A stretch of 64,000 nt of DNA, taken from contig CAJFCJ010000009.1 in NCBI GenBank assembly GCA_904063045.1, positions 476,942 through 540,941 of the forward strand, in the 5' to 3' direction. The stretch is from Dimorphilus gyrociliatus (taxonomy: Eukaryota > Animalia > Annelida). The position numbers and the translations under genes are program-made. Below, one piece after another: positions 29,013-55,753 of this stretch (the first letter of the stretch is position 1; each line of letters opens with the position of its first letter). The notes below the pieces were generated by a model. The model made no database searches and had not been told where the DNA came from. It saw only the letters and a program-made list of their open reading frames with translations.

Positions 29013-31030
29013 ATGGCTACGGCTTCGCCGTACGCTATGCTAAGCTGTACATTGTGCCAACGTTGGGAAAGTATAAGGATTTTAGAATGTCAGCATAAAG
29101 TCTGCTTGAACTGCCTTAAGGACGATGCGAAATGTCCAAAATGTAACGCTCCACTCGACACTGACTTTGAACCATTTAACCTGAGCGCCATCGAAGAAGA
29201 GTTTAAAAGTTTTTTCACCGAAACAACTAATTCGTTTTGTTCATCTGGAGACGGAGCGGAGGCGAGTTACCGCTGCGAGGAATGTTGTGAGAATTTGTGC
29301 TCTTCTTGCTTGTCAGCCCACCAAAGGGTACGGTTGACTAAAGATCATTCTATACTACCATTATCTCCGCCACCCTTTAAAAGCGACCCAAAATTACATA
29401 GAAGACTTCGAGACGAAATAGACAACTTTGAACAAGCTATTATTCAGGTTCAGAAAACGGCTGATTGCATCCAGAGACGAGCCGTGGCAGTATCAAATGA
29501 CGTTCATGGGAAAGCATGTCATTTTATAGGCCTGATCGAAGAGCGGGAGCGTGAGCTACTGAGGCAAATTGATAATATCCGTAATTGTAAAGTGGATACA
29601 CTTTATAAGCAGTTGGATAGCCTAAAAGCCATATGCCTACAGCGGAAGTATCAACTCTCTCAATTGGAAAGAGGCGCCGATATCGACTACAACATTGTTA
29701 CCTATCCCACTGAACCGTATGAAGACGATGTAATAACCTTTTCACCTCCAGACGTTCATCTGTTTGATATAGAACAAAAACTTGGTAGAGTATCAAGTTC
29801 TGCCTGTGCTACTCTATGCTATGCTTCGGGCGATGGTTGCAGGTGTGCTGTCGTCGCTAAAGTCGCTGTCTTCTTCATACACGCTGTCGATCATAACGGT
29901 CAAAGTAGAATGGGTGGAGGCGATCCTTTTACCGTAATCGTTAAGAATGCAGCCGAATCTCAGGTTCTTCCTAGCCAAATTGTCGACCGACTAAACGGAA
30001 ATTACGTAGTCAGCTACACACCAAATGTGGAAGGAATCTGTCGAATATATGTCACACTTAGAGGCAGAAGTATAAAAAATTCGCCATTTACTGTTACTAT
30101 TCGGTCAAGCCGAAATTATGCTTCCATATCACGCGCCAAATATATATTTAGTCAGGAGGGAGATGGCGAAGGTCAACTATCCAGACCATGGGGAGTTTGC
30201 ACTAACAAGGACGGTTTCGTAATTATTGCGGATCGCTCAAACAATCGAATTCAAATTTTCGATTCGCGGGGGAAATTTATGAAGGCATTTGGAAGTTTGG
30301 GATCAAGACCCGGCCAACTTGACAGACCCGCAGGTGTCGCTTGTAATTCTCGAAATGAGATTATCGTCGCCGACAAAGACAATCATAGAATTCAAGTTTT
30401 CGATCAGAATGGTCGTTGGCTGAATGGATGGGGCGAGAAGGGTGAGTTGAATTCTTTTAATATCTTTTGTTGACACTTACAACAATCAATGCTTAAGGTT
30501 CAAAACCCGGCCAATTCAACTACCCGTGGGATGTTGCTGTAAATGATAAATCAGTAATAGCCGTTTCAGATACAAGGAATCATAGAATTCAATTATTTTC
30601 TATGGACGGTAGATTTCTTACAAAGTATGGGTCCGACTCAACTATTGGTGCTTGGCGCCACTTTGATTCGCCCCGCGGCGTTTCCTTCCTACCGAATGGA
30701 CATCTAGTTGTTACAGAGTTCAATAGTCACTGCTTGCTAATTATTAAAGACAGTATGTCGGCTGCTCACGTCCATGGTCAAGAAGGATCTGGTGCAGGTC
30801 AATTACTAAGGCCTCAGGGAGTCGCCTGTGATTTCGAAGGGAATATTATAGTTGCCGATTCTCGAAATCATAGGATACAGGTATTCAATACCTCAGGCAA
30901 TCTGATTGCAAGATGGGGAACATTCGGCCATGAATCTGGTCAATTTGATAGACCATCCGGTGTGTGTATTGGACCTGATGGAACGATTTTCGTTGTTGAT
31001 TTCGGAAATAATCGAATTCAAGCTTTCTAA
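29013..31030 (+). CDS. TRIM71: TRIM-NHL E3 ligase lin-41/TRIM71 (RING, one B-box, coiled coil, filamin, 6 NHL repeats); intron 30442-30497
   Basis: C3HC4 RING; B-box [25 protein letters not shown]; filamin GGDPF...YTP...I.GSPF-like; NHL repeats such as [45 protein letters not shown]. Confidence 0.9.
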
Positions 31031-31044
31031 CTTTTATTCATCTA

Positions 31045-31111
31045 TCAGGGATTTTTCAAAATTTTTTTGACTACCTCCTAATAGAAACCTACTTCAAGAA
31101 GATATTCAGGG
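31045..31111 (+). promoter_or_regulatory. miRNA target-site cluster in the lin-41 3'UTR (miR-125/lin-4 and let-7)
   Basis: TCAGGGA 31045-31051; ACTACCTC 31070-31077; CTACTTCA 31089-31096; TCAGGG 31106-31111. Confidence 0.7.
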
Positions 31112-31748
31112 TCTTATTGTATATCTATATATTTTTATATATACATACCTTTTTTGTTTTCTTTTTTTTTGTTTTTTTTTTACCAATTTCTATAATTTTA
31201 TCTCTTTTTATATGCTTCTTTTTCTTTGTTTTACGATTATTTCTTCTATTTTTTTGTTCTGTTTTACAAACTTTATATTATATTTGTTCTTCTACGAAGC
31301 TTTTTTTTATTAAAGACACTTCTTTGACGGAGATGGGCAGCTTAACTTTTCAATACTGCATATAAAGGAAAAAAAGAAACAAAGCAAAAAAAATTGGGAA
31401 TAACTTTTTATTGCATGAAACCTGACTTAAAAAATTAATTAAACGTAATATGTGTCAAGCAAGTTTTGATTACAGTTAACATTATTTTGCAATATTCTCT
31501 ACTTTTATGCTTTTATAATTGTTAATTGATTGTTTTTGGTATTTTAGCTAAAGACGCTAATTTACCTTCTTATTAACATATTTCAGTTTCCCTTTTCAAT
31601 TATTAAAAGAACTTTTCTTTTCATGAAAAAGAGAATATATTATATTCTAAAAATTAAGAGTTAAGAATATAAGAACATTAGATACCCTTTTTATTTGTTT
31701 ATCTTTTCTTTCTTTCCTTCTAGTTCCCTTCTTTAAATTTAGAAATCA

Positions 31749-32297
31749 TTAAGTATTTTTGTTCTCTTTATATAAGGATTTTGTATAAATGGGAGTTGCT
31801 TCTTCAACAATTCTCTTTTGTGATTTAAATCGCTTCGTTTTACTCGGGGGAAGAGAAGACTGTGGCAGATGTATCTGTTTAAATTGTCACTTTCTCAATA
31901 CAGACATTACTTTCGCATTATTTTTGAATTATACTTACCGGACGAGGATAGGGTATCTGATAATGAAGTGCTGGGTTGTAAATGTCATAGCATTATTATC
32001 TCACCAGTGCATGTACATACTTACCCATTTCTATCCGACTTTCCCCTTCTCGTACATGCTGTCTAATCTCTTCAAAGTTTGTTAACTAAAAAAAACTGGC
32101 TTAAGCGAATATTTTGCGAAATGATCGATATTAAGAAATTTTGTTGTTACATCTTTATTTTTTCTAAATAACGTTCTCGTTTCAGCTAAAATGAAGTTTC
32201 TTTCATTAGTCGTTTCGTTAGCATGGAGCGATACCCAGGTTTTAGACAGTTTAATACACCTTCGATACAGTCTGAATACTTCATTTCTTAAACTCAT
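31749..32297 (-). CDS. LYRM1: LYR-motif protein 1, 4 exons
   Basis: EVFRLYRRCIKLSKTW...ILAETRTLFRKNKD|LTNFEEIRQHVREGESRIEM|ALHYQIPYPRP|IHLP matches the LYRM1 pattern. Confidence 0.9.
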
Positions 32298-32823
32298 TAT
32301 GTTTTTTTTTATTTCTAGTCTACTGCTTTCCCACTTAAGAAATATTCATAAGATATTTTCTAAAAGTCACTGAATTTATCTTTCAAAACAAGCCAACTTC
32401 CAGTTAGCAAAAGTTTACTTTACCAGTTTTCTCTGTGTTTTGTTTACAGTAGCTTACTTGCATTTATTTTGCGTAATAACATATTAAATAGAAATTCAAA
32501 TGCAAAACTTTGACATTATCTAAAATGGCTTAAAAAGTAGATTTATGCAGTATATACATATTTTTTTCTTTGAAGATATAAAGCTTCATAAAAAGTAACG
32601 GAATTTTGTTAATTCGAAAATGGTAAAGTGTTTCTCCCATTAGAAAGTATAGCTCTAAGGCATAGTTAACTAAAGCTATAAATAAGAAAGTTAAAAGACT
32701 CGAATACGTAATAGTTCATTATAATTTATTGTACTTTTACAATTACGATAACATTAGACTTTTTTTCAAAAATCGAAAGTGTTGATAAGAATAAAAAGTT
32801 TTGAAATAAGAAGAATATACACT

Positions 32824-54350: not shown

Positions 54351-55753
54351 TAAACAATTACTTTATTTAAAAGTATTGTAAAATGTTGATAGTAAATTAT
54401 TAATTAAAGGGTAACTACCTCCATCTAGTTGTTTTTTTAATAACTAAGGTAATAAAGGATTATTTTGCATGGTAAGAAATCAAGTAGAGTGAATAACTTT
54501 CTAATGCTAAAATGTCACTGCAGCTATGTTGCCTTTTATTTGTATTTCTTACCATTTACATTAGCAAAGCAGATTTGACATTTACGGTTAATTCTTTAAA
54601 GAGAAGAAGCTGTAAACTCCTGTTCGTGTATACTATATACTTGCCTATTGTATTTATGTATATTTTCGTTAGAAAGAAACTGCAATTTCTTACAGTTTTT
54701 CCTCTACTAAGGATAACTAGATTTCATATAATTTCTGATCTATCTTAGATGTTTTATTATGTAAAATAATGGTCTGTTGTACTGATCAGTTTAAAATACT
54801 CTCTCTTTCTCTCTCGCTCCAAGATTTGAATTAAAAGTGAAAAATTTCCTCCCACAGAACTGTTTAATAGCACTAAAAGCAATGAAAGAAATAAGAATAG
54901 AAAAAAATAAAGAATAGGAGAATAGGAGGAAAAAGATAAGGAAAACCTTAAAAATAGATTATTATTCTCTTTCTTCTTTTTCTTCTTCTTTTCCCTTCTT
55001 TATTTTATATGAATTTCTTTTATTGTTTTTTTTATACAATTAAAAATAAGGAACCTGCTTCAGGTTATGTACTAACGAAATACAATTTTCAGTAAACGCA
55101 ATTTTACGTCCATTGCGTTTTATCTATTTATAGAACAAACTTTATTCGTTACCTTGATGGACTCTAATCATCATAAACGATTTATTTTTTTTCCCACGCT
55201 ATCAATGCAATGATTCATTATTAATGTTTGGGGTATTTCTTCTCATCCCTTCTCTAATCTTTGTCCAAATGTTAAAAATAGACGAAAAAAGTCTTTAAAG
55301 AGGTTTTTTTTCTAAGATATTTGTCTTATCTATTTGATAAATGGTATTAAATTTGATAAGATTTTAGGAAGGGATCAAACTTCTGTTTTTCTTTAGGGGC
55401 CATAGTAATGATTTTTGTACGGGTGGAAGCTAAACCTACTAACCATGGTAGTCGTGCGTCATGTAATTGAATTTGATTGAAGTTATTTTTACAAGAAAAG
55501 GGATACATACAGATGTCTTTCTTATGGATGGAACGTCTTTCGTGATTGAAACGAAGACTGCCTTCCCCCTTTTTAAGACTATCTATATCCGGGAGAAGAA
55601 ATTGGAAGCCTCAAATTTTGGACATTTATATATTAAAAATAGGGTGTCGTGTTACTTGAACTATCTATTTAAGGTTATTTTGTATGGCCTGTGGCTTTTT
55701 CTCGTCTCTGTGTTACCTCTTGATACTGTGTGCTACATTCATATCGCTTATTC

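Follow-up and report, generated by a model that had tools for sequence, protein, structure and literature searches.

A compact candidate let-7/miR-125 response element behind the TRIM71/LIN-41 stop codon of the annelid Dimorphilus gyrociliatus

The 81 nt behind the stop codon of the Dimorphilus gyrociliatus TRIM71/LIN-41 gene most probably constitute a compact microRNA response element, a candidate cassette in which four seed matches follow one another in the order miR-125, let-7, let-7 (with one G:U pair) and miR-125. The gene is encoded in the 64,000-nucleotide stretch of DNA analysed here (the window), which is AT-rich (~34% G+C) and was taken from a 77.9 Mb assembly of 349 contigs. Judged from sequence comparisons, the cassette is a real, selected and compacted member of the known let-7/miR-125 module. 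The features on which this reading draws are listed in Table 1.

Table 1. Coordinates of the TRIM71 gene, the seed matches, the conserved blocks, the microRNA genes and the sites at other TRIM71 loci (window positions unless a contig or locus is named)
Feature	Position	Strand	Basis or remark
TRIM71/LIN-41 coding exon 1	29013..30441	+	ORF; Pfam; PDB; 3′ boundary from spliced RNA contig
Intron (56 nt, GT..AG)	30442..30497	+	RNA joint 30440/30497 (cut +1)
TRIM71 last coding exon (NHL repeats 3-6)	30498..31030	+	Translation; Pfam; PDB
miR-125 8mer in CDS, CTCAGGGA, status uncertain	30813..30820	+	Pro-Gln-Gly codons, NHL repeat 5
Probable 3′UTR	31031..31335	+	RNA contigs; 3′ end inferred
Identical block, 14 nt, with site 1	31038-31051	+	L009 alignment
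Site 1, miR-125 7mer-A1, TCAGGGA	31045..31051	+	Inside spliced RNA contig
Identical block, 13 nt, with site 2	31065-31077	+	L009 alignment
Site 2, let-7 7mer-m8 with nt 9 pairing, ACTACCTC	31070..31077	+	CTACCTC core 31071-77
Site 3, let-7 8mer with one G:U at nt 4, CTACTTCA	31089..31096	+	Weakest element
Identical block, 10 nt, with site 4	31103-31112	+	L009 alignment
Site 4, miR-125 6mer, TCAGGG	31106..31111	+	Seed match
Candidate poly(A) signal ATTAAA, uncertain	31309..31314	+	First AATAAA/ATTAAA past stop (+279)
let-7 copy	C2:1227299		Seed GAGGUAG intact; 2 mismatches to canonical let-7
let-7 copy	C24:1041242		Seed GAGGUAG intact; 2 mismatches to canonical let-7
mir-100	C24:429302	-	Near mir-125
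mir-125	C24:428910	-	Seed CCCUGAG intact
Upstream let-7 sites, Ridgeia	L014:5767-5823		
Upstream let-7 sites, Lingula	L016:5805-5859		
Upstream let-7 sites, Haliotis	L029:5811-5990		
Upstream let-7 sites, Tubulanus	L030:5759-5766		
Upstream let-7 sites, Argopecten	L033:5978-5997		
Upstream let-7 sites, Saccoglossus	L031:5676-5683		
CCAAAGGCA-like motif, Haliotis	L029:8425-8450		Approximate
CCAAAGGCA-like motif, Argopecten	L033:8560-8580		Approximate
CCAAAGGCA-like motif, Lingula	L016:8470-8500		Approximate

Pfam analysis of both coding pieces, which end at a TAA stop codon (31028-31030), revealed a B-box, a Filamin domain and NHL repeats (two in the first piece and four in the second). Exon 1 encoded the B-box, a coiled coil, the Filamin domain and the first NHL repeats; there was no Pfam RING match in the ORF, and a RING pattern was recognised by eye at the N-terminus. 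The protein was queried exon by exon in searches, folds and trees. TRIM71 was the top PDB match for both pieces (E values of 3e-94 for exon 1 and 3e-92 for the last exon), followed by Drosophila Thin (1e-63 and 3e-53) and TRIM2/3 (~1e-44), such that TRIM71 ranked above Thin and TRIM2 by 30-40 orders of magnitude. All named matches of a protein word search were also TRIM71. The domains, the PDB ranking and the named homologues all agree with the lin-41/TRIM71 identity proposed in the first-pass annotation of this DNA, and by these matches the gene ending at 31030 is the TRIM71/LIN-41 orthologue.

All four motifs that the first-pass annotation had placed within about 80 nt of the stop codon were found at their positions, the last ending at +81. 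They match the seeds on the + strand only. The sole other + strand CTACCTC of the window, at 54415, was also reproduced. Folding of the sites with RNAduplex paired site 2 with nt 2-12 of the let-7 copy on C24 (-16.7 kcal/mol), and sites 1, 3 and 4 formed seed-only duplexes of about -11 to -12 kcal/mol. Pairing beyond the seed reached at most nt 9-12, no stable 3′ helix was found for the G:U site, and RNAduplex did not return a let-7 site of the C. elegans type, in which a bulged or wobble seed is compensated by extensive pairing of nt 13-19. As modelled, the UTR sites are therefore canonical seed sites and not the bulged, 3′-compensated type of C. elegans. The gaps of 9-11 nt between the seeds of sites 2, 3 and 4 may block simultaneous occupancy.

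The cognate microRNA genes were found in the same genome. The Rfam let-7 model (RF00027) matched two loci with 47.8 and 45.8 bits (E values of 1e-7 to 1e-6; gathering cut-off 53.5). The mir-125 gene was located by a pattern together with the mir-10 Rfam model, which scored 31 bits (below the gathering cut-off of 47.5); the Rfam lin-4 model scored no higher than 25 bits (E value of 0.39). The mir-100 and mir-125 genes were 390 nt apart (C24:428859-429330; L007:1050-1532, minus strand), with no let-7 between them, both let-7 copies lying elsewhere. Each of the four sequences folded as a hairpin, with energies between -31 and -37 kcal/mol. With two let-7 copies, mir-100 and mir-125 present as hairpins with intact seeds, the absence of these microRNAs, which had been raised as a ground against the cassette, does not apply. 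The Dimorphilus microRNAs in MirGeneDB 3.0 are genome-only predictions without small-RNA reads (PMC11701709). There were no mir-100 sites in the three Dimorphilus-type UTRs, namely those of the window gene, of its paralogue and of the relative L009.

L009, a Logan contig of SRR23372229, was the sole close relative compared. It encodes a syntenic PNP-TRIM71 gene pair; over exon 1, the protein is 92% identical. Fourfold-degenerate sites showed a raw difference of 51% (124/245), which is near saturation, and the L009 3′UTR contains an insertion of 26 nt behind the stop codon and many further changes. An alignment of the two UTRs revealed that the three longest identical blocks other than poly-T (14, 13 and 10 nt) were those containing sites 1, 2 and 4. 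Site positions were identical at 27 of 29 nucleotides, versus about 68-70% over the remainder of the UTR (Fisher p 0.004-0.005). The L009 counterpart of site 2 is a full let-7 8mer. At site 3 the core TACTTC was kept and both ends were altered, removing the position-8 match and the A1, which makes this site doubtful. At the level of this alignment, the comparison shows that sites 1, 2 and 4 of the cassette are under purifying selection; the conservation in relatives that had been proposed as a check held for these three, and was only partial for the G:U site.

The miR-125 8mer in the coding region was also retained in L009, as follows from the conserved Pro-Gln-Gly codons, and was missing in the paralogue and in both Capitella and Ridgeia. 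It paired with nt 1-8 and 10-14 of the genome's own miR-125 (-22.7 kcal/mol). The 15 codons around it (30797-30841) differed from L009 by one synonymous change, against an expectation of about six. About 3% of 15-codon windows in the CDS were as quiet, and synonymous change was similarly low in its opening codons and its final 20. A let-7 7mer-A1 in the CDS (TACCTCA, 30889-95) was considered as a site, was not retained in L009 and was taken as a chance match.

A second TRIM71-like gene, fast-evolving and encoded by a single exon, was found at C2:2200474-2202692 (L010:1415-3633, minus strand). Its product has 45-51% identity to that of the window gene and contains a RING recognised by eye, a B-box-like region, a Filamin domain and six NHL repeats. 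The public protein model of this gene begins at the B-box, and the open frame extends upstream through a RING-like motif. A quick tree paired the two Dimorphilus genes on long branches, a grouping that may reflect long-branch attraction. The 3′ flank of the paralogue contains a miR-125 7mer-m8 at +7 (about 6-7 nt past the stop codon), a let-7 7mer-m8 at +77, a let-7 7mer-A1 at +237 and an AATAAA near +320. The miR-125-then-let-7 order is therefore that of the window gene, in unrelated flanking sequence, and the paralogue supports the candidate cassette independently.

The two let-7 copies differ from the canonical A at nt 10, which is C in the C24 copy and G in the C2 copy; one copy begins with C rather than U. 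Opposite nt 10, the window site has a G, which pairs with the C of the C24 copy, and the paralogue site has a C, which pairs with the G of the C2 copy. This match-up could be partner-specific pairing or chance.

TRIM71 loci of eight other bilaterians (Capitella, Ridgeia, Lingula, Haliotis, Argopecten, Tubulanus, Saccoglossus and Limulus) were compared with the window gene. These loci are orthologous and, like that of Dimorphilus, have sense-strand let-7 and miR-125 7-8mers downstream of the stop codon. Over all eight, let-7 matches numbered 49 in sense versus 7 in antisense, and miR-125 matches 29 versus 8. A miR-125 8mer lies 27-176 nt past the stop codon in 5/8 loci, and miR-125 is the first site past it in 6/8; in these six the let-7 sites come next, between about +500 and +1300, or later in Limulus. 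Most outgroup sites are full 8mers, distributed across about 1-4 kb, whereas those of the window gene lie within 81 nt, which bears out the earlier description of the cassette as compact.

Additionally, let-7 7-8mers were observed 11-325 nt upstream of the annotated TRIM71 ATG in 6/8 outgroup loci (Table 1). They form pairs ~45 nt apart in three species, and in Ridgeia and Haliotis one upstream let-7 site is fused with a miR-125 8mer as CTACCTCAGGGA. Most of these sites are separated from the ATG by an in-frame stop codon and are therefore non-coding. Sites of this kind were absent upstream of the ATG in both Dimorphilus paralogues and in L009. Haliotis, Argopecten and Lingula have in common a CCAAAGGCA-like motif, which includes a miR-9-type 6mer (CCAAAG) and lies ~12-20 nt before the miR-125 8mer near the stop codon. 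The Capitella 3′ flank contains an overlapping let-7/miR-125 composite, CTACCTCAGGG, at +501 (L013:8550-8560) and a mir-100 8mer at +2842, and hence has sites for all three members of the ancestral microRNA cluster.

How much of the Dimorphilus cassette is functional is a matter of degree. That only part of it works, namely the let-7 match at 31071-77 and perhaps one miR-125 site, with the rest marginal or inert, is a serious possibility, albeit one to which we give less than an even chance. Two of the four sites, the 6mer and the G:U match, belong to weak types, the G:U site of L009 lacks the position-8 match and the A1, and the duplexes of sites 1, 3 and 4 are as weak as reported above. Site 1 starts only 14 nt past the stop codon and the miR-125 site of the paralogue only 6 nt past its own, in a zone where sites are reportedly usually ineffective (Grimson et al. 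2007). Against this, both miR-125 blocks are perfect over 14 and 10 nt despite the 51% fourfold divergence, and the paralogue and five of the eight outgroup loci also have a miR-125 site close behind the stop codon.

We consider it very unlikely that the conserved blocks bind another factor, be it an RNA-binding protein or a structure, and overlap the seeds by coincidence. The identical blocks do exceed the seeds, for example by 7 nt upstream of TCAGGGA that have no predicted microRNA pairing. This explanation would nevertheless require three separate blocks each to coincide with the seed of one of two pre-specified microRNAs, and the same two seed families recur in the paralogue with its unrelated flanks and in the eight distant loci. 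A screen of 44 conserved microRNA seeds revealed let-7 and miR-125 to be the only families with 7mer sites in the window TRIM71 UTR and the only ones matching all three Dimorphilus-type UTRs; none of the remaining seeds was common to these UTRs.

A chance cluster in an AT-rich flank is effectively refuted. Single seeds do occur elsewhere, as at 54415, and the pattern TCAGGG, 1-100 nt, CTACCTC was not enriched genome-wide (30 matches over 2 x 78 Mb versus 39 for the reversed control), so the argument rests on the location of the matches and not on their number. Two of the 30 matches lay directly behind the stop codons of the two TRIM71 paralogues. Over both strands together, the window contained only four let-7 and three miR-125 7mers, of which two of each family fell within 265 nt at the end of the gene, in the final 220 nt of the CDS and the first 50 nt of the 3′UTR. 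Both families occurred as 7mers in 0/1000 simulated flanks (first-order Markov, 320-nt flank). Together with the conservation in L009, these counts uphold the earlier claim that the clustering in the expected gene exceeds chance.

RNA contigs placed the cassette inside the mature TRIM71 mRNA. A 2663-nt contig (record 20 of X7) is spliced over the TRIM71 intron, and therefore derives from RNA, and extends to 31068. Further X7 contigs, at 31039-31090 and 31062-31116, overlap with it, such that coverage is unbroken from the CDS through 31031-31116. Contigs of a ~1% divergent metatranscriptome (X1) aligned to 30613-31085 and 31069-31290. The RNA runs were searched as contigs only, with 31117-31189 skipped as a repeat. 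Polyadenylation before 31045, which the first-pass annotation had named as a threat to the cassette, is contradicted by these contigs. There was no AATAAA or ATTAAA between the stop codon and +279. The ATTAAA found there was not conserved at the aligned position in L009, which leaves it an uncertain signal. RNA past 31190 was present in one contig together with a convergent gene and could derive from either strand, which makes the TRIM71 3′ end at 31335 a putative one.

The convergent gene is a four-exon member of the LYR family (Complex1_LYR) on the minus strand (31190-32322), with introns of 54-65 nt, a 32-nt micro-exon (31939-31970) and CT..AC joints in the RNA contig; its four exons were joined solely to read the frame. 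It has a stop codon near 31749 and an AATAAA that reads TTTATT on the + strand (31397-31402). As its RNA contig continues to 31190, TRIM71 and this gene may have overlapping or adjacent 3′ ends. It is extremely improbable that the cassette belongs to this gene as a long 3′UTR or read-through: an RNA contig does connect 31190-31874 to its spliced exons, but its AATAAA falls ~300 nt short of the cassette and its stop codon lies farther still, every seed match is on the + strand, and it is the spliced TRIM71 contig that enters the cassette.

A let-7/miR-125 response element in the TRIM71 3′UTR would act as let-7 and miR-125 of the worm accumulate: loaded Argonaute would bind the seed matches of the cassette and the TRIM71 mRNA would be repressed, by the same post-transcriptional switch as in nematodes and vertebrates. 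The cassette could thereby have a role in developmental timing. The earlier proposal that the heterochronic module survives here in compact form is supported by the gene identity, the microRNA genes, the RNA contigs, L009, the paralogue and the outgroups. Comparison with the outgroup loci indicates that the order was kept in Dimorphilus and the spacing shrunk. The arrangement with miR-125 near the stop codon and let-7 further on looks ancestral, and the spacers, once hundreds of bases long, appear to have been reduced to 10-20 bases in this 78-Mb genome.

More tentatively, and we regard this as rather doubtful, the cassette could be what is left, in reduced form, of a TRIM71 mRNA design ancestral to bilaterians, with let-7 sites in the 5′ leader (sometimes as CTACCTCAGGGA), a stop-proximal miR-125 8mer and downstream let-7 8mers. 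Dimorphilus would have lost the 5′ sites, compressed the 3′ sites and gained second copies of let-7 and TRIM71; the match-up at nt 10 hints at partner-specific pairing. Such a three-part design may not have been described as such so far.

The pairing of let-7 and miR-125 with lin-41/TRIM71 is a textbook case of conservation, covered in the literature searched mainly for nematodes and vertebrates, with no treatment in an annelid or other spiralian. In Dimorphilus, a miniature and progenetic marine annelid, the module would have persisted through extreme genome compaction, under measurable purifying selection, and been retained in both TRIM71 copies after gene duplication. An element of ~80 nt is small enough for direct mutagenesis or reporters, and the cassette provides a handle on the possible involvement of heterochronic genes in the paedomorphic life history of the worm.

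[quoted passage not shown] The C. elegans lin-41 gene resembles the Dimorphilus cassette in that the target gene family and the two microRNA families are the same and the sites lie close together in the 3′UTR. That UTR, of about 1.1 kb, reportedly carries the let-7 sites LCS1 and LCS2 and a lin-4 site (Reinhart 2000; Vella 2004); in these C. elegans sites, extensive pairing of the microRNA 3′ part makes up for an imperfect seed. The main Dimorphilus sites differ in being canonical 7mers with little 3′ pairing, and all four lie no more than 81 nt from the stop codon, in a UTR of ~300 nt. The vertebrate Lin41/TRIM71 genes (mouse, chick and zebrafish) are like that of Dimorphilus in that both microRNA families target the orthologous gene, and unlike it in having 3′UTRs that are kilobases long.
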